Translations under genes and position numbers: made by a program | Part shown: in pieces, positions 2,500-34,600 of the stretch | Numbering within the stretch: position 1 is the first letter of the stretch | Layout of the letters: each line of letters starts with the position of its first letter | Notes under the pieces: generated by a model | The model's database searches: none | The model's input: only the letters and a program-made list of their open reading frames with translations | Told to the model about the DNA's origin: nothing | Source: Eutreptiella sp. 'Long Island Sound 2002' | Lineage: Eukaryota; Protista; Euglenida | Length of the DNA stretch: 64,000 nt | NCBI GenBank assembly: GCA_964036045.1 | Contig: OZ038378.1 | Coordinates: 156,426,001 to 156,490,000 of the forward strand | Direction of reading: 5' to 3'

Positions 2500-2700
2500 C
2501 CTAACCCAAGCCCTATGACCCCCCTAAAGCAACAACTTGCCTAACCGAATAAATATCTCCGCCGCACACCATGGGGGGTAGAACCTGCCAGAATCTGGAG
2601 GCATGCCGAAATCATTCAACAGAACACACCAAATCGTCTTCAGCCTCGCCCCGAAAACCCACACATCACGACCAACCAGAACTGCACGGCGGCACATGCG
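2500..2700 (+). mobile_element. Diverged fragment of the 5' region of the YR retroelement at 18770-18950, in opposite orientation
   Basis: Translations align: GARLKTIWCVLLNDFGMPPDSGRFYPPWCAA vs GARMKTIMCGPLNGFVMLPQPSRFHPPWCAA. Confidence 0.65.
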
Positions 2701-2730
2701 GCGCTGCTTCAATGCAGGGTAGGGGGTCCA

Positions 2731-3191
2731 GTTTATTTATTTATTGATTGATTATTATTATTATTATTATTTTTTGTTTGCTGACACCTGACTGAGTTCA
2801 AGCCAATTGGCCTACGGTGTGTGTGGGCACCTAGGTATGTACAACATGACTTGGGAAACCTACAGCTTCATGCGGATGAACGATGAGGCATGTGCCTGTA
2901 CATGGGACGCTGTCGGGGGGGGGGGGGGGGATTTGTAGCTACTGTACACTTCATGCAATGGTGTAGGTTGCCACGGATGTGTTGAGCCCACCAAATTCAG
3001 ACTAAGAGAGGAGAGATAAAGAGGGAAGACATGATGCAAGCAGGGAGGAGGCAAGGGGCTTGGTCCAAGGGAAGAGCGTCGAAAAACACACGTTCCCGGG
3101 TGGTCAAGAGGGCGGGCTACTCATCTCTCGGCCCAACATCTCCCCAGCGAATGGGAGACCCATTGAGCTGGACGCCGTCCGTGTGATGGAG
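2731..3191 (-). mobile_element. ~460-bp retroposed element (SINE or 5'-truncated LINE) with (TAA)n/(TAAA)n tail and 15-bp TSD
   Basis: AGGGTAGGGGGTCCA at 2716-2730 and 3192-3206; T/TTA-rich tract at 2732-2775 is an A-rich 3' tail on the minus strand. Confidence 0.75.
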
Positions 3192-4145
3192 AGGGTAGGG
3201 GGTCCAAGTTTTTAGTACAGTGTCTTACATCTCGACAGATCCCCAAACATGGTAGTTGTTATGCCACGCGCAATTGTCTCATTGTTGGTGAGCATTATGG
3301 CCCGCTTGAAGTACACTTCTTTGGTATCCCACCCTTTGATGATGGGACGGGCCCTCTCCAAAACTTCAACAAGATTTCCGATGTGATTCCTAGATGCAAC
3401 AGACATGGCCACCCGATAGGTAAATGTGGTGCAATGGGCTGGTGGTTGTAGGATGGTATCCATGACGACCAGGAGAACAACTCGTCGCAGTGCAGCGCAG
3501 GGCACATGTCGCCCTCAATGAAGTCAACCAAATTGAAGCATTTGGGGTATCCCAGTAGCCTTGGAATCAAAAAACTGCCCCCATTTTAGATGCGAAGGCG
3601 CATTTGCCGCCCGGCGTACCATATAACGCAGTTGACTTGTGACACACCAACCACAATTGCAGGGCCGTGTAAGCGTCACGAAAATGCAGGATGACACGCC
3701 CCACGCCGTCCATGCATGCGTCGTGTAATACATCGGAGGAAATGGTGACACGTGATTTCCACAAAAAGTGTTCAAGACCCTCCCGTGTGTGTCAGGGTGA
3801 ATTGGGGTTGGGGTTCCCACCAATGCCTCGTTTCCGTATGAAACCCTGTGCATTTTGACACGGCTCCCTTTGTGCTTAAATGCTTTCCGTCCTCTTAGCT
3901 ACGAAGCGGCTACGTTTGTGATGGTTCTCTGCAATGATAATGCTGAGTTGAATTCGGGCGGTAATGGTGTCACTCACTCACCAATGACGCAGACGGCTTC
4001 CAAGCTTCTGTTGGAACACATTGGGACTATGGTTGTGTCCGTCACGTCGATGAAAAGTACACTCGACGGTGAGAAAGAAGCATTTCGCTAGAATCTCTGC
4101 ATGATAAACGGCATCAACAGGTTGCAGGGTGGTGGATAGCAGCTC

Positions 4146-4433
4146 ATGTTGGACATTGGTAGTGTATACTTTCATATCGGCCGACCATCACTGACAGCGG
4201 AAACGTCATTCATCCTGGTAGTCTTGGCACATGGAATGTTTGCCTGTAAGGTTGACGAGTACGTGTATCACTTCATTGACTGGGACCCTACACTGTTCCC
4301 GATTGTGGTGGAATATTTTCGAAGAGCATCCGAAGATGAAGCACCATACCCGATCCACCTAGCATCTTGGCATTCTCAAGACAAAACGCCAGTGGAGAGC
4401 CACACAGATGTTTTGGTCGATCCACAAGACTGA
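4146..4433 (+). pseudogene. KCTD-type BTB/POZ (BTB_2) domain fragment
   Basis: LDIGSVYFHIGRPSLTAETSF...GMFACKVDEYVYHFIDWDPTLFPIVVEYFR follows the lNVGG..F.t...TL.....FIDRDp..F..iL.YLR pattern; conserved residues are eroded and a stop lies three codons upstream. Confidence 0.75.
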
Positions 4434-4966
4434 CAAATCAATGGATCGTGCCGGCAAGGCAACCGACTACAACTTGTCTGTGTTTAGCCATCCTGACATT
4501 ATTGATGTAGTCAATTTCTCTCTCTGTTGTGAAAATTTTTGCTGGGTAGTGGGCAGTACATGGTAGCGTCTATTTGCTATCCCTATGGGTGGATCCTTCA
4601 GCGCCGAGTCCGCTCACTAGTATTGCATCTGGTCCTTCCATCTTCTCAAAGCCCGATCTCGTGAGTGGGGCACTTTGTCTACATCATAGGAGGGCTATCG
4701 TGTCTGGCACAGCCCGGCTGGTGGCATCATTGCTCTTGCACAGTTTCGTGACAACGCTGTCGTGGCTTCGTGTGGACATCACACAATGTCGGCTGTGCGC
4801 AAGGTGTGCGCCATTTTAACTCATATATGGAATTTGCATGTCCTTTGCCCTTGTATGAAAAAAAACCAGGCCATCTTTGCACTGAAAGTTGTATGGGGCA
4901 AGGGCTTCGTGCATTAGGTATTTGTATGCATAGGGCTGGTGGCTATGGCACATGTGTCACCCACCC

Positions 4967-5087
4967 TAGTTTTGCTTGTGCCCCCCCCCCCCCCTCGGTG
5001 TCCTGTAGCAAACCACGACACATACCTCAGCCCTGGCACCCCCTTGGCAATTGACTCGCTTCAAATACAAACTCATACACTAAATGG
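4967..5087. repeat. ~120-bp dispersed repeat, copy 1 (copy 2 at 7705-7825)
   Basis: TAGTTTTGCTTG...CACATACCTCAGCCC...CAAACTCATACACTA shared, roughly 80% identical by eye. Confidence 0.8.
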
Positions 5088-5275
5088 GTTTGTTTGGCTC
5101 TAGAAGAGCATGATGGAGCCAGGAGATGGCTCGGTGCCTGGGCAGGCAGAGCCCCTTTTGTTGGCGCGAACAGTACTGTGCGGGCGGGCAAATCGAAGCT
5201 GACTGGCAGCTCACCACAAACATCAACCGTGGACACAAAGGCGCCATGCGGCGATGTCCCGATCTCTCCATGGTG

Positions 5276-7625
5276 TGTGGTGAAACCGAGAAGGGGGTAG
5301 CGGGAACCCCCCCCCCTTCTCGGATTGGGTTGACCCCGACTCCAAACCAAACAAGTGTAGGTGGTCCAATTGGACGGGGGGTGTTTTCATAGCCTGTTGG
5401 GTGCCTACATGTGGAAAATTTTCGGTCCCGTTCTAAACGGCCCAAATGGGCCGTTTTTGTATTTGCCTTCTCGGACCTCCCCGGGGGGTTTCCGGAGGCA
5501 CTTTCTGATTGGGAACCCCTTCTCAAAATTACTTCTCGGCCTACTTTCTGATCAGGAACCCCTTCTCAAAATGACTTCTCGGACCCCCTTCCTGAAATTG
5601 AACATGCACAAGTGGCGCAATAAAAGACACTTCCCTAGGGCCATGTTATTCACTCCTATTCCTCTGTTGCCCTCTCCCTGTCCCGGTGGATGGGCTCCCA
5701 ACACGTTTTAGCCCAACATCCAATCCATACATGTTGAGCAAGTGCCGCATGCCCCTCACGGAGAAACATGGATTCTTCACCGACCACCCCTGGAAACTAT
5801 TATGAATGTGTACTTTATAGGCCGAGTTCCTCCTCTCCGTCGGCACCAAACTAAAGAAGTACATTGCGCGGTACTTCCGCACAAACCATCCAGTATGGCA
5901 CGCCGTCCAATGCACCCATACCGTTGCCTTCCAACCCATCAACTTCCAACATTGCCCCAAATTTTTGGCACATCTCTCGGCTTCCTCAACCTCAACATCC
6001 GAAAGGTAGATCTTTTGCCTCCACAAGTTGTGAAGGTGGGTTAGGGCAAGCAACAAGGTGTGCAGTACGGTGTACACCTTTATTGCCCCATTCGGGGCCT
6101 TACGATTGGGGTAGTATTTCCTGAGTAGGTCAACTACTCTTTGTTGGTATTGTGTGTCATCTAGAAAGACACGCGGACGTTAGGTCAAAGGTGTCCGTCT
6201 TTGTCGGAGGCAAGGCCACAAGGTCCGGTTGAGGGATACTTTGTGAGGCTTGCATCAAGTCGCCCCACACATCCTTTAGGCGGGCAACCACTCCCCGACC
6301 GTCTCCTTCTTGCACCCAAGAGGAGACATCTTGTTGCAACCTCTTTTGGGTTGCATTGCAAAGATAGTCGGTTGCATGGGCATAGTCCCCACCACGCCGG
6401 GGGGCTGGGATGGCCCGGAGGAAGGCCCCCCACCTCACTTGTTCATTAACCCCCTCTACCGGTTCCAACCTGTCATGGTCGTCACACGACCAACACTTTC
6501 CGTGCGGGGAGTTGTTGGCGACCTGCATGCCCTTGCCGTCGCCCGTCATACCCACCTCATACCCCAAAACCGTGCCATCCTCCAAGGGGACATTGCAGTT
6601 CGACTACAAATGTTTAATTTGGGCGTTGAGCCTTGCCTTGGCATCCATTGCACATAGACGACCACGGTCGTCAGTTCCACCCATGACCCAGAACGTTACC
6701 CAATTGTCTGGGTTCCTCGCACTGGCTGGGCCACTAGGCCAAACCCCAACAAACACATCGCAGCGGGTGGCAGCGACCCGTCACAACGGCGTGGCGTCGG
6801 TGCATACCCACACGGGGATCTTGTTCGTGCCCCTTGGGGGGGTGAACACCCCTTGTTCTTGTGCAAGGCGCACTTGCTCACCTACAAGATCCGCCAAGGA
6901 CACCGCAGCCGCCGCACGTTTCTTGCCCCCGTGCCCCGGCACACTCACAGCCACGGCATCGTACAGCGTTGTCGCACGCCTTGCCTCATACAACTCATCA
7001 CGAGTGCACCTTCCAGGCAACCGCAATTTCTGTCGCATAGACAGTTGCACTGCGCGGGCACCGCGCAACACATCAACGGCATATCCATTACCGTGTGAAG
7101 CTGCTGTCATCACCTCCCCTGCATTGTCCATACCGCTACCCACAAGGGAAACCACACCGGTTGGATCCCGCCGAAAAGACACCTCCGGATCCCGGAGGAT
7201 TGCCCGCACCACGCGCTGCACCAGTGCCAGCCGCTCACATTGCACGACTGGCCGAAGTTCAAAAGTAGGGCTTGCGCAGCATTTTGCCAGCCTCATCCTC
7301 AAAGCAGGGCACCATGCGGTCCATCTAGAAAACGCAGGCACACGGTGTCTAAACAGGAAGTGCCCGGAAACCCCGTTTCCCGAACCCCTTTCTGATACGG
7401 AACCCTACAAGGCTCCCCATTTTAGGAACCCCTTTTTGACCTGGAACCCCTTTCCAGATTGATTGAGTTCTCGGGTATTTTTCGGATCCAGAACCCCCTT
7501 AGTTTTCATCCCCCGAACCCCTCAAGTTGTTTTGGGCCCGCTATACCTCGATGGGGGGGGGGGTCCCCGGGAGGCCCATTCTGCGGGGGGGGAGTCCCTG
7601 GTACCAGCTTCTCGGTAGCACCACA
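5276..7625 (-). mobile_element. Decayed DNA transposon with a RAG1/Transib-like DDE transposase
   Basis: Imperfect TIRs TGTGGTGAAACCGAGAAG (5276) and CTTCTCGGTAGCACCACA (7625); GAACCCC(TT) subterminal repeats at 5300-5590 and 7365-7530; no TSD found. Confidence 0.6.
5646..7341 (-). pseudogene. RAG1/Transib-like DDE transposase, ~550 aa; 2 premature stops and at least 1 frameshift
   Basis: Motifs in order: VCTD (D1), GMTGDGK (D2), CWSC, GDYAH, HWTACH (HxxxxH), then E exactly 20 residues later in TERRN. Stops at 6781 and ~6605; frameshift near 6190. Confidence 0.75.
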
Positions 7626-9650: not shown

Positions 9651-10654
9651 CAGGTCTCCACATAAGGCACAGGTTTATGAGATGAGAATAGGCGGGCTGC
9701 TTGGTCGAGATGAGCCGCTCACTGATCGCCGCACTGAGCGCACTTCTCAGGACGCGTGGGCACCCTCGGGGCCGCGAGAGCGGCTGGCGGCACGTTCCCG
9801 TCTGCCTGAGTAGTGTTGGGATCCGACACTGGCACGCGGCGTGGCTTGAGAGCTGCTTTGAGTCAGCATCGGGGTCATACGGGAAGGCGGATTTTTCAAC
9901 GGCGGCCCGCGACGTGGTCGAAGGACCCGGAGAGCTGCAGCTCGCCGTGACAATTGCTTAGACGGCCCAAGTTGCCCGACCCCCCCCCCAAACGCGCCCC
10001 CGACAAAAATGTCGCAGATGATGGTCATCAGAGACACGTCCTACAGGGGGGGACTTTTAGCAACAAGCAGCGCATGTCGGTTTCCGCTCGTTTTTGACTA
10101 CCCCCATATACGTTTTTGGCACTTTGCGCACAACACCAAGTTGAGGCTGGGCCCCGTGAAATATGGGGAAAACAGTCAAATTCTGAGGAGGAACCCCACG
10201 GAATGCATGTGTATATATGCACGGTGCAATCTCACTACACCAGCGGAGGCCCTACTCGTCGACGCATACCATTCTCATCAAAATTTGTTCTGCAGACAGT
10301 GAACTACTGAAGTTTGTCTGGAAAGAGACAGATCTCACCAAAACATGCTGCACAGGGACAATAATCGCAAACAGTTGTCTGGTTCCAGACACACGACGGG
10401 TAACCTGGTGAAAAATTGTTGTATTCCACAACAAGAACTGTGGTCCGCACCCAAATGACATAAAAAAGTGACAAGGGACTGTCAGTCTCGTGTTCGGGAA
10501 GGGAAAAAGGCCAAAACAGGCCACTGGGACCCAGAGCGCAGACTGGCACGGCAACAGGGTGCCACAGTGTTTATATGTTATGAATAGATATCGTGGTCAC
10601 CGAGCAGGCTTACAACAACAGTGTGCAACCAACAGCAACTACAACAGAGCACGT

Positions 10655-13600
10655 TTAATTCTTTTTGGAGCCATTGAACCGGTACTTCCGTGCCTGAAAC
10701 CCAATATTGGCCTTCTTGGAAGCAGACGACTGAGAATCGGTTCCCGCGGCTGCATACTCGTCAGGAGGTGATGCCTGGGCTTTTTTGTTGCCTTTGCCTT
10801 TTGACTGTGACCCGGAGGCTCTGTTCTCGTCTCCTTTGCGTGTGCGACCATCTTTTTTGCCAGGGCCCCGTGACTGCTTCGGTGTACCATACACGGCGTT
10901 CTCTGGCGTGGCACCCACCTCTTCCACTTCCTCCTCAGACTCCTGCTCTCCCACCGCCTTCTCGGGCACACAGCTGCAGTCCACAGAGCAACCGTCGGCA
11001 AAATTTTCAAACACTGCATTCCAGGGGATAGGGCTCAGCCCATCAGCGAAGCGTAAATTGCTGCATACGAGGGCACCAACGTCTGCAATAGATTCCTGCT
11101 CCGTGGGCAAACCCAAAAACACACTGATGGGTACCGGGATGCGCACTGCCATACTGCAGGCCAGCTATACTGAACTACTGATCACCAGGAACCACAGGGT
11201 ACTTGCTTCTGAGGGTACTGCACCCGCCGGGTGGTGCATGATAAACCCAACAACCTCTGTACACAGCTGGTTCACCATTGGACCACGAGAAAAGGCAAAG
11301 TAGCGAGTCACCTGTATAAGGGAACAGTGAGTCTGAGACCCCTACTGGTGCAGCTGGACTGGCCGATGTTGTCTGGTTCCAGACAATTTCCCACAATTTA
11401 CCCTTCTTAGGACGCATTCTGCCTCATATTGTCTGGTTCCAGACAAACTTTAGGATTCAACGGTGCACCCAGCGTGACTATGGTAGCAGGCAGCAGATCG
11501 CAACAGCAGACAGCAATACCTTCTTGGGTAGCGGATCTTTGGACACAATCAATAGCTCAGTGAATCCCATCGAGTACTGCTGTGTGAGAGATCCCAGAAG
11601 AAAGCAGGCCACTCAAATTGTTTTCAACCCCTCGTTGTCGTGCAACTTTCGGAGACCATCCAGCACTCCCACGACGTCACAAGCGGAGCCAACAATGAGA
11701 ACAAGCGTCCCAGACACCAAATTGCGGCTGACAACGGAATGAATGCCTTCCACATGTCCCTTTGGAACTTCAACAATGATCAGGCAATACGGCATGTTGG
11801 CCACTGTAGAATGTAGCGGCATACCAGATGCCATCCCAGTGATATGCATGACCCCATCTAGGGACTTGATGTCAGTCACCCCCGCCTCTGGGGCCTCAAA
11901 CCCAATGTCCTCGGTGATGAAGTTGACATCAGCAGCGATCTTGACCTCAGGGTTCACCGGGGGAAGTTTCAAGGCATTACGGAGGGGAGCATACGTGGGG
12001 TCACTCCAGATTGCAGCAGTGACCACATACTTCCAGGGGGGCCAGCAATTCTTCTCAGACCACTTCCAATTGTACGTCTTGAAGGTGACATGGGTCTTCG
12101 ACAAGAGACTCTGTTCACAGCGGGCCCGTTCTGCAAGCGTTTTGCGACCGGGGTCAACCAGGTCGTTGTCCGGGTGGCAGAGATGATGTTCCCACAGACG
12201 TGCAGCCTTCAGTTGCTTTGCCTTTTTTGTAATCATTTGCAGTGACACAATGCTGGAGCCCATGTACTGCGTAACCTCCTCGAGGTCTGGTGGGATGAGG
12301 CCTTCGATACATTTCCAAAAGTGCAACTTTACTGGCAGTCCACGCTTTTCCAATCCATGGACAGCAACCACAGCCTTATCCCCCATCACTTGCACCCAGG
12401 CGGCAATCGGAAACCAGTCTTTTCTTACAGTGTCCTGCAGAGCAGACAGGGGTGTTACCAGACACAACAGGAGGAATTCTGCTTTGAAAGGCCGCATCAG
12501 TGAAATGTTGTCCGGTTCCAGACATGGTGATCGAGGTATAGGCTTTGACAGGGATAAAAAAAGTTGTGTCTGGTTCCGGACACAAACAGGAGGAATTCTG
12601 CTTTGACAGGCCGCATCAGTGAAATGTTGTCTGGTTCCAGACATGGAGGTCGAGGTACAGGCTTTGACGGGGATAAAAAAAAAGTTGTGTCTGGTTCCAG
12701 ACACACACAGGAGGAATTATGCTTTGACAGGCCGCATCAGTGTGTTGTTGTCTGGTTCCAGACATGGAGGTCCTGGCACAGGCTTTGGCAATGATAAAAA
12801 TATATCCAGTGTGTGGTTCCAGACAACTGTGACAGCCTTCGTTGTCGCATGGGACAAATGTCCTAGCCAGGGACGCATGTGCACATAGTTCCTGTACTGC
12901 CACCCTGTGCAACACCAGGCATACCAGTGTCCCCTCCTTCAGTGTATAGCCACCCTTCACGTACAGCACTCCCAGGTGTTCTCGTATGGATTTCTCCTCC
13001 AGTTCATCGCGGTCCAGCTCAACACGCATGAGTTCCATCCGTGTAGACAGCTTCGGCAGGGTCGTGGCAGACTGCACAGCGTGTGATGCGACGGATGGTC
13101 ACAGCAGTTACCCCCCCCCCCCCCGACGAAGCGGCCGGTCACGCAGGAGAACGGGCAGGTCGAGATGGACGTCACATGCGCAGGATATTTCACTGGTGTG
13201 GGCATGCAGTGTCGCAGTGCACTGTCACAGTCGATATACCTGTGACGTGCCAGCGATTGACTCCCGTATGTGCAGAGAGACATCCGTACGAACCGCTTGA
13301 GCAAGAAATTGCACTGACCATGTTGGCGGTTCCAGATGGGCATTCATGTACTCCCGTGAGATTCGTCAACAGGCCTCGGCGATATGCTGCCCCGACAAGA
13401 TCCACTACTGCCCCACTGCGTCACGCCACACTATGATTCGGATTATTGCTGCATCTGGTGGATTCCTGCGTAGTTCTGTCATCTTGTCATGGACAAGATC
13501 TTCATCTAGCACTCTGATTTGGCCATGCTCCCTTTTTTTGTCCCATTGCAGTCTGCTGAGGGGCAGCAGGACCTCCTGGTCTTCAGTATGGGCACCAAGT

Positions 13601-13660
13601 CTCACTGGAGCATCTTTCCCCTTTGCTGTGTCACCACGTTTCCTACTACTATGCACTGTT
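10655..13660 (-). pseudogene. Spliced cargo gene: ParB/Srx-like N-terminal domain and weakly MTase-like C-terminal region; 4 premature stops
   Basis: Exons 13660-13240, 13071-12925, 12434-11520 and 11311-10655 join in frame through three GT-AG introns. The ParB-like segment is LPLSRLQWDK..GQIRVLDEDLV...IIVWRDAVGQ*WILSGQHIAEA. Confidence 0.7.
12449..12826. repeat. ~120-bp higher-order minisatellite (2 x ~60 bp), 3 copies, inside a predicted intron
   Basis: The unit CAGGAGGAATTCTGCTTTGACAGGCCGCATCAGTG...GGCTTTGAC.GGGATAAAAAAAG repeats near 12468, 12587 and 12708. Confidence 0.9.
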
Positions 13661-14077
13661 CTGGCAATTGGCAGGGCATAAACAGTCAGTGTCTGTTTCT
13701 AGACACATTTGCAGTCCAATTCCGAGTTAGCTGGCTACCCAATGTGGTTCTAGCATTTCCCAAAACAGAGCAGATGACGTTGCAGGCAATGGAGGGCACA
13801 ACACACAGTCTGTCTGGTTCCAGACACAACACCTTGACTTCAACAGATGACATGGGTGAAAAATCATTAATTATCTGGTACCAGACGGCTACGGTACTTC
13901 TGTGGGCAATAGAGGGGGTACAAACAGTTGGGGTGTGGTTCCAGACACACATGCAAGCAGTGTTTATAGTGCTGGCTTCCTCAGCCGGGTGTTCGGTTGG
14001 TTAGGGTCACATGCTGTGGTTTTCCGGTGAAATAGGGTTGTACAGCAATGCAACAGTGCACGTACGCGCGCATCTCA

Positions 14078-16333
14078 TCAGTCTAGCACTGCGTTGGTTG
14101 ACATTAGTGGTCCCTGCCGGAGTAACCCGATGCTGCTGTGGTGCCCAACTCCAGCCCTGTGTCTGGTGCCAGACACACACCTTTTACGTGCCCGGGCCAC
14201 TTCGGCGGGGTGTCTGCAGTCCATTGAGTCATGCTCCAGACTCACAACCTTACACTCCTCCATTTCTTGCAGTAGGACAACAGGTGGTGGTTCATCATCC
14301 TGTGCGTCCACGTCCACTATCAAATCCTCCACGGACCGGTGTGAATTTGAATCCGAGACAATTGCAGCTTCCGGGGCCTCATCGTCATCATCTGCTACCG
14401 CAATTGCTGTGTCCCGCACCCGCTGAGCCTGTGCATCTCGGCCTGCATGCTGGCGGGGGTCTCTGCCTGGAACAATGGTTCTCAACAACCGTGAGACCTC
14501 ATCGGTGGGCGAACGCGTTGCGCGTGTCAATGTGGAGAGTGATCTAGTCAACAGTCTCTGGTACAGTGCCACACCGCCGTTGTCCAGTGGTTGCCCTGGG
14601 AATTTCAAGTCCTCGGGGACAGCGGTGAATGCTGCCTTCTTTCCACTGTTCCATTCAACGTGGACCGTGCGGTTGGTTGTAATGGCCAACAGGAACCTGC
14701 TTAGCCGTGACGACATGATCGCAACCAGTCCACTGCGGATCTGCCCCCGCTTCTTCTTTTCCCCGCGCATTGGTGGTGCCATGCTCAAAAACAGGTCCAA
14801 GGTCTGGTCAACAGTCTTCATCTGGGGGTATGCGCGGCACCTAGATCCGAGACGACTCAACATGGCCTCCAGGGGCTCCTCAGCATAACAACAGCCCGGG
14901 ACGGCGTCATTCCAGGGTAACCACAACAGAAGGGCAGAACAAAGGGTGCGTACGTAGGGGACGTTACAGTCAGTGTCCATTGTCAAGGCTACAATCAATA
15001 CCAAACTCAACTCCAATACTTTGCGGGCCGTACGGCCTGTCCCTGCCGGTCGACCATCCCAGTTGCAGTCACGAACCAAAGTTCCAAGGAGGAACGCAGC
15101 CGGAATGTAGAGGGATCAATGGAATGTAGAAGTGCAGGAGGTTCTTCAGTCCAGTCAACCATACGAGTGGTAGCTTGCGGGATGCCTCTGGAACTTGCAT
15201 AATTGAAGTCTCCTTGTGTACAATGCGGTCCTCAACGTTGGGTGTGGCTAACAGTAGGGCACAAGATTGCTTCTCAATGTGCAACAGCTTCGGGTGGCAC
15301 AGGATATCTTCATCTACCGCAGGCATTTGCTGCCCAAGGTAGCCCAATATGGGGAAGAACTTACGGTGGAATGGTACACACATACTTATAAGGGTGCCAA
15401 CAGCCATACATCATTGGGAGAGTGACATAGTGCTCAGACAACTTAAAGGGGTTGAATGTGCGACTGTAGATGAACTTGGCGAGTCTGTAGCATATATTTT
15501 CATCCATCAGAAGGGGCATGACGTGGCGCGTGTGAACCTGAATGGCTAGGCATTGTTCCATGATGTGGAGCAAGTCCTCATTGGAGCTGGAGACCAGGGG
15601 GTACCATTGGAGTGAACGAATGCTGTCCCGGTGCACATCTAGTGGAACCCGTAGTGGATCTCGCCTCAAAGCGTCCACCGCTCGTGGGAACTCCCGGAAA
15701 TTGGCTGCTATGGTCTGTGCTGTTTAGGGGATGCGCTGGAGAAGATCATCAAGTGTAGGGAAACCCGGGTACATAGGAATCGCAGTTGTACGCAACACTG
15801 ACATGGCAGTGACGTTCAGACAGCAATCGAGTCGGACCGGGTCACTGCAGTACCGTCTGCAATACCAGTTGTCAAACTGCACCACCACCTGCTTCCCTGC
15901 CATTGATCTCCAGGTGGCGTTTGTTCTGGCATGTGCTTGTTGCCCCAAAGGCGGTAACCGGCCCGCGGCAAGACCTGCATGTGACAATCCCCGCATCGCC
16001 CTGGATGCACTTATCATTGAGCCAACAGCCTTTTCCTCTGGCAGAGCCATCTACCAACACATTTGCATCATTGTGTACACCTGGCGTGCAAACACTCCAT
16101 ACCACCTTGGCCACGGTGTTTGCCCATGAGCTTTGATCAACGTTGCCATATTGCGTCTGGTTCACCGGTTGACCCTCATATGTGCGCAGAACTACAAGCA
16201 GGGCTGCACCTGGTTCCTCATCGCGTAAAGCGGCATCCATAAGCTCCAGTGGTGTACCATACTTCCCTCCACGTAAGAACTCACGCAGGAGACCAAAGGG
16301 ATCTGTCGCAGCATTGGTCACCTGGCTCATCAA
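14078..16333 (-). pseudogene. DDE transposase with insertion domain, superfamily unassigned; stops and frameshifts
   Basis: VVVQFDNW (D1), SSNEDLL, MPLLMDEN (D2), YGCWHPYK (conserved His), CYAEEPLEAMLS (E); lies inside the TIR-bounded element. Confidence 0.7.
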
Positions 16334-17089
16334 CAGTGGAACAGAACCAGAGTAAACGAAACAGTGAACAACAACGAAACATACCTGCTCAGTGACCAGA
16401 CAATTGGTGGAGAGTGTCTGACACTAGACACTGTTCACTCAAATGAGGATCTTAATCACGGAATTTCAGCAAAATGTCTGGAACCAGACACATTCTCCAT
16501 GTTATGGGGGTGTACATAGGACGTATGACACTCGGGACAGACACCTGGTGATCCCCCCCCCTGAAAGGTTGAAAATTGTTTAGTTTGTCTGGAACCAGAC
16601 ACTGCGACCTCAAAAACTCGTTGTGACAGGGGTGGAATTTCAAAGAGTGTCTGGTTCTAGACACTTTTCGAAATTCCAAGAGAAAGGTACATAGGTGGAC
16701 AAAGATAACACAGCACAAAGTAAGACTTGTTCACTGAAGCTAAAAATTGACCATGCGCGGTCACCTGGGTTTGTGTGCGTGGATATGAGAACCAAAAAAA
16801 ACAGGCTGTCAAGCAGTCAAATTCAGGCACGCGTCTGAATGACTAAAAAACAAAGTATGAAATTTCCCACCCGCCAAAATGGCCCTTTTTGGGTGTTTTG
16901 GCCTGATTTACTGGGGTCGGCAACTTGGGCCGTCTAAGAATTGGGGAGCCGCACTGACAACTCGGGATACTCTACGAGGCTTGCGAGAGGGCCCCAAGAT
17001 CCGGGCGTGGGAAATTCATGTGGGGGGTCGGATGTCGTCATTGCTGTCGTCCCCGTCCATGGCGACGGGCGGTAATTTGTGATGGTACC

Positions 17090-19439: not shown

Positions 19440-20720
19440 GGCGGTTCGAATCCTGTCAGCCAACTATTGGCGGTGGTGCCGGCCCCATTTTCACCCGACC
19501 GGGGTAGGGACCGCCAACCATAAAGACTCTAATCATCTGCATTACCATTCGGCCACTGCCTTGTCTGAGGCGAAGTGTCTCCCCACTGCTTGGGGCCGCA
19601 AACTATGTGTTTCTGTCTAGCTGACTGCTAGCTTGGCTAAGGGACTGATGGGCCAACGACCTCAACACTGCTTGATGGTGGGGCAGGTGGCCAGTCGCGC
19701 GCATACGGAGAACGTGAGCAATGGTGGCCTCACTTTCGTTACACACCGTAACGGACCTGTGCCCTTTCCTAATGCAAACCTGATAGCCCACGCCAGGCCT
19801 CTCAGCTCCGTGGTCTGCTGGCTTGCAAAGCGGGCTTGGGGCGCCACATGCGTACGGACGCCCACACCCGGGATAAGTGCTCCCACCCGCCACCTCCCTG
19901 CATCACGCGCACCATGAACACAGACTATGACATCCCCGATCCACAGAGAGGAGGACGTAAGCCTGCCCTCCTTCCCAATCTGGAGGGCCTTCAACTGTCG
20001 CCACGCCTCCCCTCCTGGCGCCTGCCAGGGCTCGGCCGCCACCGCCGTCAACGTTGCGAGGCTGTCCAGCATTTTCAGGGGGAAACCCTGGGCAGGCTGC
20101 TTGACCCCTCCCACCGTCCTACCCCAGCGCAACCAGCAGTAGGCGCCCGCGGCGAAGGGACAACCGAATCCCCGCGGGCGCACGTGCCAGTTCAGTAGTC
20201 TCAGGAAGCTCTGAAGGTGCTGGTCATTTCCTCTCCCCACCGCCAGGCGCAGCCAGCCCACCCACAGCTGGAGCAGGGCTTGCTCATGGGTCCTGATTTG
20301 CCGGGCCGCCAAATCAACCTCCTTTCCCAAGAATGACGCCACAGGCACTGGGTCCAACACGCTCTTAGGAATGATGAGGAACCCGGCCTCGATCTGTGCG
20401 CGCACGGCCGAACGCCCCGCTTTCCTCGGCACCTCCCTATCAGTGAAGACGACCAAAAAGTCATCAAGATAGTGAACAAGGAGTATCTCAGGGGGCAGTA
20501 TCCCCCGCAGGATGCGGGCCAAACTCGTTTGGCACAAATACGACCTGTATTTCCAGCCGAACGGCAGACGCAACAGCGCCACAGGCGGGGCCCCGGGGGC
20601 GGGTCGGAAACGAAAAATCCGCCGTGCCTCCGGTGGCAAGCAAAAGCTCCAGAACGCGTTCTTGAGGTCTATGTGGACCACTTTAGGGCATTGAAGAAAG
20701 TAGAGCGGCCGCGCATTTTC
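19440..20720 (-). pseudogene. Second DIRS/VIPER-type RT + RNase H
   Basis: HIDLKNAFW, LPFGW, YLDDFL, FLGK; RNase H QQTTELRGL and a decayed DN motif. Confidence 0.9.
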
Positions 20721-28605: not shown

Positions 28606-31600
28606 TCAGATCTTAGGAGAAGCAGTGAACCGGGGCGCCGAAACGGGGCGCTTGACAAGTGATCCGGATGACAGCACTTTGGAGGGGGTGTACGGGGCTG
28701 CGCTACTGCGGGCGGCTGCCACGGCGTCAGTGGCCCTGACGCCTTTTTTGCGGTGGTGGCCCACGGCCTTCTTGGAAGGCTTCGGTGTGTCGAGCAGCGG
28801 AACCATCCCAGTGCTCAATCCCAACGCCTTCACGATCGGATTTGCCGGAGGTTGTTGCCTGGCCGGCGCACGTCCAGTCGCGTTGACAGTCCTGAGCATG
28901 TCCATTTCAACATCGTCCAACAAATCCGCTGCCAAGGCGGTGGAGTCCAAGACATGCGTACCCGCGAGCTTCGTCACCTGCGCCCGCGGCAACGACACAA
29001 AGAGGGAATCCGACGTCTTCTGTGCACTGTCAGCCAGGGAGGAACCCAACCGTGGGAGGGCAGAAGTGGGACGCAACTTGGAACGGCCTTTGGGTGACGG
29101 GGAGCGCTGCCGAGCGGGTCTCGATCGCTTGAGGGGGGTCGACGTAGCTCTGTCATAGGGGCCAAAGAGGGTGACTGAACTGCCCAAGGAGCTGGAGTGC
29201 AGCCGTGTCGGGGAGGCCCCGCGCGAGTCCGACTTTATTTGGCTTGCGCTTTGGCTCATAGACGTGTCGTTGAGCGCGGCGGCGGTGGGCACAAGGATAG
29301 CCTTGGACTTGGGGTGGTCGACGTGCGCAATGAAGTCGAGGTTTGAGTCCAGCGTTTGACGCATCACCAATTCTCTGCGGAACGAGAGCTTCTCCACCAG
29401 CAAGTACGTGCGCGCCTCCAGGCGTTCGAACACGGGCATCTCCCGCACCTCCTTCTCCAATCCGGCCCAATGCTCGCGCGCCTCCGCCCATGACTGAGCC
29501 GTGTGATGCATCAGACGGATGCGCTGCAGGAGACGCGCCACTTCCGGGGGCAGCTCCGGCACAATGGATTGCTGCATTGGCGCTTGCTCAAGTTTGTCAT
29601 CGGCAGAGGTTTCTCCATCACTTGCTTCCTTCGGCACATCTGCCTCAGGGGCCGGGGGCGTCTCTGGTTTGGATGGCGTGACTGGACGGGCCTCGTTGGG
29701 ATACAACGCCTGGTTGAGTACGCGCTCGATCCTGGACATGATGACGGCCACTGTGGTGGCCTCCTTGAAGTTGCTTTCGTTCATGAACCGCTCCCGAACG
29801 CCGGTGAGAGCCCGCAGCTCGTCGCACACGGCCCTCAGGTCCTCGACCAGCTCGTTTTGCATCATTGCGATCGGGCCTCCCCCCTTGGCACCGGTGGTCA
29901 GCCCTAATTGGGTGGCCCATCCTTCTTCAATGGTCCACGACAACGCAGGGAACCAACTGTCTGGATCCACGTCCTCAGCAGTCGCAGCCACACCGAGGCC
30001 ACTGCCATCTGAGCCATTCGCTAGAATACCACTTGGCGTGGCTCCAGATTTGGCGGATGCGACGGACGCCACATCAGCCGGCGACGCTGCTCCGGGTTTG
30101 GGGGACGATTTGGGCGAACCGGGGCCCGCTCTGGCGGATGCGACGGGGGACGGGCCGTGGGGCAGACCCCCATGAGGTCTGGCAGAGGAGAGAGGCGTGG
30201 GGGCCTTTGCGAAGCCCGATTCGGAGGGAGATGGACTGCCCTTCGTGTCCTTGGGCTTGGGGTCTGGAGCGGCTGTTGGTACCGGTGATGGTGAGGGTGA
30301 CGGTGACCAGGGCCGCAGTCTTGTCGTAGTGTCTGTCTTGGCGGTCTTGCCGGTTTTGGCTGACGGGGACAGTCTCTGCGGCGCCGTGGAGGGCCGGCCT
30401 GCCATCGACGCTGGCGCAGACGTGTCCACGTACGACTTTGGAGGGCGGTAGAAGGCGGTGGCGGTGGCGTTTGTGAGATCAATGGTGCGCCGTGCCGCGC
30501 TTTTGCGAGAGCTGCTGAATGGCACGGAGGGTCGGAACGACGACAGAATGGGGACGGGCTGGTGCTCCTCGGCGGGTTCATCGTCCTGGCGCGGCTGGTA
30601 CAACTTATATGTGGAAGATGGGTTGTAAAGATCCTTTGCAGGTGTCGGCGGGGGCCTCGGGGGATCCTCCGCTGCAGCTTTAGCTTCTGTCGTCTTCTCG
30701 GCCTCGGAATCTACCTGAGTGTCCTCGGGCTTCCCAATGAAACTTCCCTGCACTGATGGGGCCTGGAATCCGGGTGCGGACCCTGCTGCTTCTGAGCCAG
30801 GGCCGCCGGGACCATAACGTGAGGACATCAAAGGGTCGGTGCCAAAGCGGGCAGAGACTGGCATCATTCCGGGGCCGAATCGCGCGGAGGGCGGTACCAT
30901 TCCGGGGCCGAATCGCGCGGAGGGCGGTACCATTCCAGGAGGATACCGTGCAGACATCCCCGGCGCTCCCCCTATAGAGGGAGGGTACCGCGCAGACATG
31001 CCGGGCGGTGCCATTCCAGGGGGGCCCATGCCCGGATGCCAGCGAGCCGACATCCCCGGCGCTCCCCCCATAGAGGGTGGGTACCGCGCAGACATGCCGG
31101 GCGGTGCCATTCCAGGGGGGCCCATGCCCGGATGCCAGCGAGCCGACATCCCCGGCGCTCCCCCCATAGAGGGTGGGTACCGCGCAGACATGCCGGGCGG
31201 TGCCATTCCAGGGGGGCCCATGCCCGGATGCCAGCGAGCCGACATCCCCGGCGCTCCCCCCATAGAGGGTGGGTACCGCGCAGACATGCCGGGCGGTGCC
31301 ATTCCAGGGGGGCCCATGCCCGGATGCCAGCGAGCCGACATCCCCGGCGCTCCCCCCATAGAGGGTGGGTACCGCGCAGACATGCCGGGTGCCATGCTTG
31401 CAGTAGATCCTGGTTTCATCATGCCCATAGAGCCCCAGGCTCCAGAGCGGTTTGTCATCATCCCTGGCATGCCTGGCCCGGGGACTCCAGAGCGGTTGGT
31501 CATCATCCCCTGCATGCCTGGCGCCATGACTCCGGAGCGATTTGTCATCATCCCAGCGGAGACGGGCCCCATTCCCATGGGACTGCCGGGCCCCATTGCC

Positions 31601-34600
31601 ATGGGACTTCCAGGCCCAATTCCCATGGGACCGCCGGGCCCCATCCCCATGACGCCGGTCGTCATGGGGCTGGCAGGACCCGCGCCCGTGGCATCCGGTG
31701 AAGGTGTCCTTGCCTTATCCTGTGGCCCGTTGCCCTCAAACGTACCCGGGTGCACCATCGCCTGCGAGTTGAAGGAATTGTTGTTGAAGGAGTTGTTGTT
31801 GAAGGAGGTATTGTCGAGGGGGTTGCTGCCGAAGAAATTGCTCTGGGACTGGGCCACCCCGAGGAAGGGGCTTGTGCCTCGCTGACTGGGATCCATGGAG
31901 CCTGTCTGACTGGGATGCAATGACAGCATGGAGCCCATCTGACTGGGGTCCATGGAGCCCCCCTGGAAGGGCTGGGTGCCAGGCTCGCGGTCCTTTGGCT
32001 CTTCACCTTCGACACCCTCCACGCCGATCTGCGGCTGTGCGGCCTGATCACCAAATGGAAAGGAATAACCCTCATGCGGACCGGCCTCTCCTTGCAAGCC
32101 TCCAACCCCAGGGTATTGTCCCTGCCAGCCTTGCCAGTACTCAGCGCCCGGGTACTGTCCGTGCCAACCTTCAGCCCCAGGGTACTGCCCCTGCCACCCT
32201 GCAGCCCCAGGGTACTGCCCCTGCCACCCTTCAGCTCCGGGGTACTGCCCCTGCCACCCTTCAGCTCCGGGGTACTGCCCCTGCCACCCTTCAGCTCCGG
32301 GGTACTGCCCCTGCCACCCTTCAGCTCCGGGGTACTGCCCCATGTACCCGTACTGCGCCCAGTCTTGGTACGGGTACTGCTGTCCATACGCGCCGTAGGC
32401 CCCCGGAGGAAACATGCCGCCGGCCTCGGGCACCCCAAACGGCCCAAAGGGGTGTCCCCCAAACGCCGCCTCCGGCCCCATGTACCCCATGGGCCCCGCG
32501 GGGCCGTACCCGACCTCCGGGTTCCATCCGTAAGTCTCCTGCGCGGCCTGTTGCTGGTGTGCCTCGGCCTGTCTGGCCTGCTCTTGCGCCTGCTCCTTCG
32601 CCTGCTCTTGCCTCATCTCTTGCTCTTCTTTGGTGAACCCCGAGATCTGCGACATGTCGCTCTGCCGCGTGGCCATCTTCGAGGGGTCCGACGAGTCCGT
32701 GAAGGAGCTGGACGAGCCCTCGGTCCCGGAGGACCGCGTCGAGGGCAGGGACGACAGCGACGGCGGGGCCACGGACGACGCGTCGGACGAGGCGGAGAGC
32801 TCGGAGTCCGCGCCGGCGGTGGGTATTTTGACGTCCGGCGACGAGACGGTCCGCTCGGAGGCGTGAAGGGGCGAGCTGGTCGAGTCGGACGCGGTGGTCG
32901 CGAAGGTGCCTGCGCTCGCGCCGCTCATGGGGCTCAAGGGGCTGGCGGGGCTTGAGGGCTCCAGGGCGTTGCTCCCGGGGTTTTCGGGATCGAGGGCTGA
33001 GGGGATCTGAGGGGAGTCTGGCTGTGGCTCGGGCCCCGGGTCTTTGAACGTCTCGTCAGTCACCGGACTGTCATCAAGCAACGCTGGACGCGCTGGCAGG
33101 TCTTGTGCCGACAGATACTTATCCTCGGTTTTGGCTTCCAGCTGCTTCCAAAGCCCCATTACCCTTTCCTGAGGGGTCTTGCTGTCGTCCAGCAGCGTGT
33201 TCAAGAACACCGCAAGATCATTGTCTAACACCAGATGAAAATCCTGCACAACCCGGGGGCCCGAGGGAGAGTCCATCGCATCCAAACTTCCACCGGAGCC
33301 TCCCGCAGAGTTCATGGCCGCGGGCGCACTAGGATCCTCCAATTCACGCTTCCGCTGTGCATCTCGCTCCCGGTCCTTTTGCTCGCGCCGTTGTTGGGTT
33401 GAGGCTGCAACTTCCAGGCGGTGATTCGTCTCCGCTGAGAATTCCTCCAGCGCGTTCTTAACCCCGTCAGTCATGTCATCCTTCAGCCCCATGATGGCCA
33501 AAGACTTCAAGAGGTCGTATGCATCTTTGATCTGGTGGCTGTACGAGTCCTGCAGAATCGCAAAACCTTGCTGCTGCTGCTCAAGCTGCTGGATCTGCCC
33601 TTCCAAGCGGCTGATGAATTTATCTTTTGAGTTGTGCTTGTGCAACAGATCCTTCAACTCACGGCCTGCTTTGTTCTGCTGCTCCTGCAAGACTCGCTTT
33701 CGCTCCTGCGCCAAGTCTTTCCCAAAACCCACGATGCTCTCCACTTTGTCGATCTCCTCTATGTTGGGCAGCTGAACGTTGAGTTCCTCCAACTTCCTGT
33801 AGCACTCCCTGATACCGCTGATGGCCAGCCTGTTGGCCTCCTCCTCCTCCGACAGTTCGGTCGCAGCCGTCTTCAGATCCTCGGCAATACCAACTTTATA
33901 ATTCACCCACTTGTCCAACTGCAGTTGCAAGTTCTGCCGCTCATCCTCAAGAGTCAGCGTGCGGGCCACGTTCTCGTCAAATTGAGCCTGCATTGCCTTT
34001 GCCTGCGCAATGGCCTTCTGCAACCTGCTGTCATGCAAATCCACCTCCTCTTGGAGCCTCTCCACACCCTCAAGATGCTCAACATTGAAATTATCCTTGA
34101 TTGCCTTCATCTCTTGCTGATATTTCGTGACTGCTACCTTTTGCTTGAACTTGGCCTCCTTCTTGATTTCCTCGGGTTTGGTTTGCAATGTCTGCTCAGA
34201 CTCTTCGATCTCAAGCCTCAAGTCCTGGATGTTCGATTTCATGATGGTGACCTCTTTTTCAATTTGGTTCTTCAGATTGGATTTAGCGGCAAGCATCTTC
34301 CGCTCATATTCTGCCGTGAGTTCCGCAACTTGGCTGTGAAGATGTTCCTTCTCCCTCTCGTACAACTGAACCAGGGCCTCTTTGTCTTCACTCGCAGCCT
34401 GCTTCAGCTTTTCCTCGACCTCGCGCAGGCGCGCTGCCATGTCCTCTGACAACACTTGGGTCTCTTCCATGATCTTCAGAATTCTCGAGGTGTCGCCTGG
34501 GAAACTGTCCTTGAGGATCGAGAGCTGAGTAATGGCCCCGCGAGCCATTTGGTTCATCTTCAAATCCTCTTGGGCCGAGAGCTCCAACAACTCATCCATG

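Follow-up and report, generated by a model that had tools for sequence, protein, structure and literature searches.

The window, as we call the whole stretch of 64,000 nucleotides analysed here, comes from Eutreptiella sp. 'Long Island Sound 2002' (assembly GCA_964036045.1, contig OZ038378.1, positions 156,426,001 to 156,490,000). Between 9957 and 16938 it holds a 6,982-bp element bounded by terminal inverted repeats (TIRs) as well as target-site duplications (TSDs). Two genes lie on its minus strand, gene A (16333 to ~14216) and then a second gene, together with many copies of one short palindrome. The features of the element, with palindromes located by pattern search and exons by the gene model described below, are as follows.

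9952-9956, no strand: left TSD AATTG, identical to 16939-16943
9957-9976, plus strand: left TIR CTTAGACGGCCCAAGTTGCC, followed by a run of C; complementary to the right TIR at 20 of 20 positions
10315-10391, no strand: two subterminal palindromes (10315-10330, degenerate; 10376-10391) at the 3' end of the gene strand, downstream of the second-gene stop codon (10655-10657)
10655-11311, minus strand: second gene, predicted exon 4, C-terminal part with a basic tail; acceptor CTTATACAG followed by G, supported by frame analysis; in-frame TAG at 11165-11167
11312-11519, minus strand: predicted intron 3, from the exon model, with two palindromes (11370-11385, 11430-11445; no strand)
11520-12434, minus strand: second gene, predicted exon 3, a helical plus alpha/beta domain according to homologues and AlphaFold; in-frame TGA at 11613-11615
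12435-12924, minus strand: predicted intron 2, from the exon model, with six palindromes (12509-12825, no strand) in three 121-bp tandem units
12925-13071, minus strand: second gene, predicted exon 2, 49 codons, from GT-AG boundaries in phase 0
13240-13645, minus strand: second gene, exon 1, a ParB/Srx-like segment (GQIRVLDE...IIVWRD...WILSGQHIAEA) according to sequence and hhalign
13690-14175, no strand: intergenic region with five palindromes (13690, 13811, 13872, 13932, 14160)
14216-16333, minus strand: gene A, a putative DDE-type transposase, pseudogene; motifs VVVQFDNWY, RVPLD, PLLMDENI, GCWHPYKY and AEEPLEAMLSRL
16475-16663, no strand: three subterminal palindromes upstream of gene A, two with centre AA (16475, 16586) and one with centre TT (16648)
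16919-16938, minus strand: right TIR, complementary to the left TIR
16939-16943, no strand: right TSD AATTG, identical to the left TSD

An inactivated transposon with a repeated palindrome

A sequence-only reading of the window had proposed a eukaryotic transposon of 7 kb with two genes between TIRs and TSDs, and this description holds. The 20-bp TIRs are perfect and have no third match in the 64-kb window. TIRs flanked by a TSD define a Class II TIR transposon when found in several independent insertions; 5-bp TSDs occur in four: AATTG in the window and, in related copies described below, ACCCT in L001, ATGGT in L003 and GGTTA in L009. The flanks of a further relative, L002 (8052-8056, 15907-15912), match in TAAAAT, either as 6 bp or as a 5-bp TSD with the terminus offset by 1 nt. 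The window element is an inactivated copy of a multi-copy eukaryotic cut-and-paste DNA transposon, dead because stops, frameshifts or deletions affect both of its genes. Homopolymer runs of C or G, 5-14 nt long, lie at 9976-9990 (inside the TIR) and at 13106-13124 (intron 1); such runs are likewise found directly inside the TIRs of L001 and L003 and are frequent elsewhere in contigs of the same assembly. An Rfam scan of the whole window found no family.

The pattern TGTCTGGWWCCAGACA (TGTCTGG-WW-CCAGACA) is matched 18 times with up to 2 mismatches, nine times without any; the expectation from shuffles is 0.13. All 18 lie between 10315 and 16663 and none in the rest of the window, which agrees with the roughly 20 element-confined copies of the earlier reading; L001 has 20. 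Neighbouring palindromes are mostly 58-62 bp apart, or multiples of this, and the three 121-bp tandem units hold a third of them (6/18). Every one falls outside the predicted exons: three upstream of gene A, five between the genes, six in intron 2, two in intron 3 and two past the last stop codon. Read inward, the orientation pattern of the subterminal palindromes is identical at both ends of the element.

Eight families, eight palindromes

Exon-sized fragments of open reading frames (ORFs) of both genes were found on dozens of Mb-scale contigs in the long-read assembly ENA ERZ25074135. Complete copies were found at L001:8853-16172 and L003:8667-15860. Both share 92-94% identity with the window copy, are flanked by TSDs of their own and carry 17-20 palindromes at matching positions, including two extra intergenic ones in a stretch that the window copy has deleted. 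Beyond this family, seven diverged families were recognized, in five environmental assemblies in all. Those of L002 (8057-15906, TIR CTTAGACTGCTGAGA) and L009 (5528-12057, TIR CTTAGGCGTCACAAGTTGCCCAC) are both in ENA ERZ25074135; four other environmental assemblies hold L007/L008, L022, L023, and L024 with L025, the last two sharing one assembly. With profile hidden Markov models (HMMs) of the window family and of L002, gene A, the ParB-like exons and the large domain were recognized in L009, L022 and L023, the ParB-like exons at E values of 3e-4 to 1e-10. A metagenome scan with a 7-row alignment returned two short contigs only.

Each of the eight families has a palindrome of its own, 16-20 bp long, with arms of 7-9 bp, a centre of 0-2 bp and 4-20 copies. 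Those of the seven diverged families are:

L002: TCAGCGCA-AA-TGCGCTGA, 6 copies
L009: TGGCCGAAATTTCGGCCA, 9 copies
L007: GTGGCGAAATTTCGCCAC, 8 copies
L022: GAAGACGCGCGTCTTC, 12 copies
L023: TTCCCCGCA-NN-TGCGGGGAA, 5 copies
L024: ACGGCGAGGCCTCGCCGT, 5 copies
L025: GGTGTTGARAAACACC, 4 copies

The layout recurs across families: palindromes lie upstream of gene A, in the spacer that separates it from the second gene, within the latter and towards the far end. A different palindrome in the same layout in eight families clearly points to functional cis-sites. Several of the other families have arrays spaced at roughly 60-130 bp; unlike these, the palindromes of L023 (57-5853) are single sites at a very regular distance of ~1.4 kb (57, 1469, 2915, 4303, 5825).

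One could imagine that the palindromes work through nucleic-acid structure, for example as cruciforms or hairpins, as RNA hairpins in introns, or as terminators or sources of small RNA, or that they are expanding minisatellites. Hairpins can be extruded from perfect palindromes, a 121-bp tandem repeat makes up part of the window array, and many sites lie in introns and are hence transcribed. However, arms of 7-9 bp are short for stable extrusion, the sites are dispersed and not only in tandem, and the decayed relatives L005 and L006 still keep decayed forms of the window-family palindrome, in L005 one of them at a similar distance from the TIR. Moreover, the sequence is sharply kept within each family and gives way to an entirely different one in the next, whereas length and dyad symmetry stay the same. 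As a dimeric DNA-binding protein leaves just such a signature, we consider an explanation through structure or repeat expansion highly improbable.

Two further properties hold across families. First, the order gene A, ParB-like exons, large domain is the same in the window family, L002, L009, L022 and L023, and the second gene is present in every contig reaching far enough. Because this order is fixed wherever contigs extend far enough, the second gene belongs to the core of the lineage and is not occasional cargo; the earlier reading had called it cargo. The co-occurrence check proposed with the sequence-only reading gave a matching result: in families whose contigs extend far enough, neither the palindrome nor the ParB-like gene was found alone. 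Second, the window family, L009 and L002 have CTTAG...CTAAG tips in common while their palindromes are unrelated, which suggests that tips and palindromes are read separately.

The introns are of the spliceosomal type, and in L002 the frame is restored exactly by one GT-AG intron of 80 nt. In the DNA around the copies there are ORFs for reverse transcriptase, retroviral-type aspartic protease and RNase H, of a kind typical of retrotransposons, as well as a RabGAP gene. These genes and the introns indicate a eukaryotic host.

Gene A, a putative transposase without named relatives

In the window copy, gene A is interrupted by a TAA (15724-15726), a 19-bp insertion (15112-15130), another frameshift near 15365-15410 and two 15-bp deletions, all called against intact ORFs of other copies (e.g., P0012 and P0002), and its stop codon after ...DSMDC is lost. 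Full-length relatives have 584-769 aa and are intronless as called. The proteins are 25-40% identical between families, the window family included, the N-terminal third being the least conserved part. Conserved blocks comprise W-F-D-N, L-N-x-T, R-V-P-L-D, P-L-L-x-D and Y-G-x-W-H-x-Y-K, as well as V-R-x-C-x-W, Y-V-R-T and E-E-x-x-E-A-x-L-S-R. Among sequences 27-60% identical to P0241, D191, D276, D326, E597, E598 and E601 are invariant. From the acidic-residue pattern, the position of the gene and the TIR/TSD structure, of which a DDE-type transposase is the natural reading, we infer that gene A encodes such an enzyme, with roughly 700-770 aa in the lineage. The earlier designation of gene A as a transposase gene thus keeps its basis in a gene of ~700 aa with conserved acidic residues; it lacks a match to any named transposase family.

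No match to gene A was found in Pfam, NCBIfam or PDB sequences. The search of the PDB chain-sequence set, which we expect to include RAG1, Transib and hAT (Hermes) chains, returned nothing at all. Membership of hAT (hAT5, the hAT group with 5-bp TSDs) was rejected, there being no hAT match in Pfam at E up to 10, and so was membership of CACTA/Plavaka or Transib, with no match to Pfam Transposase_21 or RAG1. The CMCT clade, which unites EnSpm/CACTA, Mirage, Chapaev, Transib and Plavaka, is characterized by CA..TG termini and by C(2)C and H(3-4)H motifs (PMC12730594). The 5-bp TSD of our elements fits this clade, and an H-x3-H motif (WHPYKH) is found only in P0258 and P0264; with CTTAG..CTAAG termini and no conserved CxxC, membership was rejected here too.

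The second gene and its large domain

The four-exon model of the second gene was derived from frame analysis and splice boundaries. All its introns are GT-AG and in phase 0, and the predicted protein has ~750 aa, a length that follows from the model. The proposal of a spliced gene is therefore upheld, as a model. The window copy has lost the 5' end of the gene, with the start codon and two palindromes, through a 328-bp deletion at ~13645, and it carries four in-frame stops, two of which are in exons 3 and 4 (see the list above). The ORF equivalent to exon 4 is open in L003. The other two stops are in exon 1, which reads ...IIVWRDAVGQ(TAG 13405-13407)WILSGQHIAEAC(TGA 13366-13368)...; other copies have Y and R at these positions and read ...AVGQYWILSGQHIAEACRRISREY.... 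The residues quoted earlier as ParB-like are thus present on the minus strand, although in the window copy a TAG stop separates IIVWRD from WILSGQHIAEA.

The domain encoded by exon 3 (273 aa) has 140 homologues in a representative library of 1.8 billion proteins. Pfam recognized no domain in it, nor in the ten homologues that were scanned. AlphaFold, given an 82-row alignment, predicted a helical N-terminal part followed by a five-stranded alpha/beta unit, with a predicted local distance difference test score (pLDDT) of 91. Foldseek found no relative of this model in PDB (best E = 0.34, template modelling score <0.2) or BFVD, and sequence searches of PDB with phmmer and with a profile gave no useful match. 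The large domain is, in this prediction, a confidently modelled fold without a known structural relative. Two enzymatic identities were rejected for it: a 2-oxoglutarate (2OG) oxygenase, such as that of the red-algal PAG3 proteins discussed below, with neither a Pfam 2OG match in the ten homologues nor a structural match, and a DNA methyltransferase, with no structural match in PDB or BFVD. As Foldseek returned nothing in either database, the domain is neither of the two.

Probable remote likeness of the N-terminal segment to ParB

The resemblance of exon 1 to the N-domain of ParB was followed through phage proteins. A tblastn search of 2.3 Gb of phage DNA with the consensus-like copy P0211 gave a single match (E = 8), and the phage protein underneath is ParB_N by Pfam; the same type of search with the ParB-like exon against plasmids gave noise only. 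We then ran hhalign locally against 11-12 phage ParB_N sequences, eleven of which had been collected by similarity to the tblastn-matched protein. With eight rows on the element side the alignment had E = 0.22; after rows from L022 and L023 had been added, P was 0.0011 and the score 28.8. As a control for circularity, the phage protein selected by the query was removed (P = 0.0026), and then also the window family, leaving four non-window families (P = 0.00023, probability 45%). Of 200 column-shuffled alignments (mean 11.3, standard deviation 2.1, maximum 19.7), none reached 28.8; the score was 10.9 for the reversed alignment, and 12.7 and 18.7 for two unrelated ones. The register was canonical and constant over all runs, with GQxR on NPR, IIVW on PILV and GGQH..EA on GHxR..AA.

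Several findings speak against the resemblance, or against a ParB-like way of working. Scans with hmmscan of the exon, including intact relatives, against Pfam and NCBIfam were empty at E up to 10, and a profile search of PDB sequences gave no relevant match. The hhalign probabilities were 11-45%, never >45%, and the first E value was poor, as given above. AlphaFold, with a shallow alignment, reached a pLDDT of 42, and Foldseek with this model returned nothing meaningful. An arginine-rich nucleotide-binding motif (GERRxR or GxxR) was not found: the consensus is (G/S)GQH-x in place of GERR, which binds cytidine triphosphate (CTP), and the CTP-binding arginines are unconserved, an arginine following only in L023 (GGQHR). 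No helix-turn-helix was recognized in the second protein, nor was a ParB C-terminal dimerisation domain recognizable, and in true ParBs it is not the N-domain that reads DNA.

It is a considerable possibility, though one we do not favour, that the ParB resemblance is a chance motif match and the N-terminal segment an unrelated small alpha/beta domain; the empty database scans, the low pLDDT, the weak first hhalign run and the missing arginines would all fit. A chance match, however, would not be expected to improve from E = 0.22 to P = 0.0011 when more diverged families are added, to persist in four non-window families once the circular components are removed, or to keep its register above every shuffled and unrelated alignment. 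The low-confidence model of exon 1 also has the helix-strand-strand-helix-strand order of the ParB_N core, with which it is compatible, and L023 has GGQHR. Taken together, these results weakly support the view that the segment's resemblance to the ParB/Srx N-domain is real but remote, and degenerate in that the CTP-binding arginines of partition ParBs are not kept. The ParB-likeness first proposed by eye thus finds backing in the hhalign statistics and register, and none in Pfam, NCBIfam, PDB sequences or a confident structural model.

The sequence-only reading had also considered a segregation module. No ParA partner was found: the element has two genes only, and no ORF has a Pfam match, ParA included. 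A segregation system is therefore unlikely.

Which protein may read the palindromes

Recognition of its own DNA by a protein of the element, also part of the sequence-only reading, appears to be the most economical explanation of family-specific palindromes. In our estimate the odds are about even that a protein encoded by the element, most probably the second protein, recognizes the element's own DNA as a dimer through the palindromes. We favour the second protein as reader because the majority of sites lie in the interior, with a concentration in and around the second gene, because the tips, the presumed substrate of the transposase, evolve independently of the palindromes, because the protein contains the ParB-like module, and because the same pairing is found in a published red-algal case. 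The largest arrays are within or beside the second gene.

It may instead be the transposase that binds the palindromes, as the transposases of hAT, Mutator and P elements bind subterminal repeats, in which case the job of the second protein would be unrelated to them. The sites that cluster within ~275-520 bp of both ends with the same inward orientation pattern would suit this, as would the N-terminal third of gene A, which is the part least conserved between families, as a specificity domain would be. In L024 and L025 the palindromes directly flank gene A. We nevertheless regard transposase sites as rather unlikely, since 13 of the 18 window sites are internal, in the spacer and in second-gene introns, far from the ends. 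In L007 the arrays bracket the second gene, one of them upstream of the large-domain exons, where the contig starts and an intron is predicted. The TIR tips that a transposase needs are conserved while the palindromes change completely, and in the published parallel the arrays adjoin the ParB-like gene (bioRxiv 10.1101/2025.02.11.637652).

Three points temper our preference for the second protein. Co-variation with the palindromes cannot separate gene A from the second gene, because both are linked wherever visible. The contigs of L024 and L025, with palindromes around gene A, are too short to reach the second gene. The mirrored subterminal sites fit the pairing of ends, and they fit transposase-binding repeats equally well.

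If the second protein is the reader, the following mechanism can be proposed. The gene A product would cut at the conserved CTTAG...CTAAG tips and make the 5-bp TSDs. A dimer of the second protein would bind the palindromes and coat or bridge the DNA of its own element, thereby marking it as 'self'. The coat might help to bring the two ends together for the transposase, like TnpA of En/Spm or the Myb-like protein of Harbinger, and/or, in the manner of VANC in VANDAL elements, shield the element from silencing. Cross-reaction between families would be avoided through the divergence of their palindromes. The most comprehensive version, which we put forward tentatively and hold to be doubtful as a whole, is an unnamed superfamily of eukaryotic cut-and-paste transposons with 5-bp TSDs, CTTAG termini and a transposase lacking detectable relatives. 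In it an obligatory second protein, with a degenerate ParB/Srx segment and a new fold, would form a ParB-like nucleoprotein coat on family-specific palindromes all along the element and in its introns, serve for self-recognition and insulation, co-evolve with its sites, and be needed for transposition or for escape from silencing.

DNA around the element and its relatives

In the rest of the window, a reverse-transcriptase domain (19662-20681, minus strand) and an RRM (42682-46941, minus strand) were found, together with minus-strand ORFs of 2229, 852 and 473 aa (28606-35295, 52745-55303 and 55310-56731) without a Pfam match. Among the relatives of the window element, the decayed one in L005 has a different TIR element nested in it at 11846-16991, with a TIR of 38 nt (CCCTAGTGGCCCAAATTAAAGTCAATATG...) and repeats of AT-rich palindromic units of its own (TTAATTTCTCGAGATTAA-like). 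In L006, positions 2542-6964 are a 298-bp satellite carrying the palindrome TGGTTTCAAGGAAACCA. Neither the nested element nor the satellite with its palindromes was accepted as a member of the lineage, as neither matched any of the three protein HMMs. The L009 element is inserted in a long satellite (4124-4942 and 12206-14411), whose units translate as WPLELGLGT.N.RFV on both sides.

Comparison with known systems

Two-protein transposons with repeats read by a second protein are known: TnpA of En/Spm (CACTA) reads 12-bp subterminal motifs and counteracts methylation-based silencing, and both TnpA and the Myb-like second protein of PIF/Harbinger are non-catalytic, bind mirrored repeats clustered at the ends and bring the ends to the transposase. 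Our elements resemble them in having two proteins and mirrored repeats at both ends, and differ in the unrelated protein folds and in their dyad-symmetric 16-20-mers, which are also present in introns and spacer. VANC of the Arabidopsis VANDAL elements (Mutator-like) is likewise encoded by the element and binds and modifies its own element (bioRxiv 10.1101/2025.02.11.637652); it is an unrelated, not ParB-like protein, for which hypomethylation has been shown.

The closest parallel is PAG3 of red-algal Plavaka elements, including those of Bostrychia, in which a ParB-like domain is joined to a 2OG oxygenase, inverted-repeat arrays adjoin the gene and binding to the own element was proposed by the authors (Petroll et al. 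2025, bioRxiv 10.1101/2025.02.11.637652; Curr Biol 2025). Both systems are eukaryotic DNA transposons with an N-terminal ParB-like domain and inverted-repeat arrays beside its gene, a likeness in arrays that applies to the window family, L002, L009, L007, L022 and L023. However, the domain fused to the ParB-like segment here has neither a 2OG nor a methyltransferase signature. PAG3 elements are 17-19 kb long with four genes, ours ~7 kb with two, and here the second gene has stayed a fixed part of the core over deep divergence. The transposon frames differ as well: fungal members of Plavaka, which belongs to the EnSpm/CMCT group, have TSDs of 2-3 bp as against 5 bp here, and the CMCT clade has mostly CA..TG termini and C(2)C/H(3-4)H motifs (PMC12730594), in place of which our elements have CTTAG..CTAAG and leave the motifs unconserved.

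A second parallel is the accessory protein of Sola1-1_Ec32 from Ectocarpus, in which a ParB-like domain is combined with an N4C/N6A DNA methyltransferase, and ParB-methylase fusions have been described from green-algal elements (Iyer, Abhiman & Aravind 2011, as cited in PMC12477816). The Sola1 protein shares with ours an accessory ParB-like domain, borne by a transposon and thought to target the DNA of its own element; its methyltransferase domain has no counterpart here, the transposase lineage differs, and the passage of PMC12477816 consulted mentions no palindrome arrays. Given PAG3 and Sola1, the belief of the sequence-only reading that eukaryotic transposons hold no such module cannot be kept.

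With bacterial ParB-parS, our system may have in common the N-domain, several palindromic sites of the 16-bp class and dimeric recognition. It differs in having no ParA, no GERR and no recognized helix-turn-helix or ParB C-terminal domain, and in that its gene is nuclear and contains introns. The likeness of the window palindrome to the parS site of B. subtilis (TGT...ACA), to which the earlier reading had drawn attention, is coincidental, because the palindromes of the other families are unrelated; a relationship in sequence to parS was rejected on this ground. Loss of the CTP residues has a counterpart in phages, where ParB N-domains activate thymine dioxygenases without needing these residues (2026 study, PMC13229309).

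ParB-like proteins with inverted-repeat arrays in algal transposons were thus already reported in 2025, and the window element is no first in this respect. What differs here is a transposase lineage without matches, with 5-bp TSDs and CTTAG tips, a fused domain without fold relatives in an obligatory core gene, palindromes that run through introns and both ends, and a series of eight families in which the palindrome has been replaced.

Implications

If the second protein does read the palindromes, the eight families, and probably more, would provide as many natural protein-site pairs for studying how a transposon tells itself from a relative, and the short, sharply defined dyad sites would make specificity swaps directly testable. 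Our reading, if true, would extend the theme of eukaryotic transposons repeatedly recruiting ParB-like modules, here on a domain of unmatched fold instead of a methylase or an oxygenase, and in a core gene, not a passenger. Finally, gene A, having no Pfam, NCBIfam or PDB-sequence match, may mark a superfamily that is missing from current classifications and from the libraries used to annotate transposable elements.

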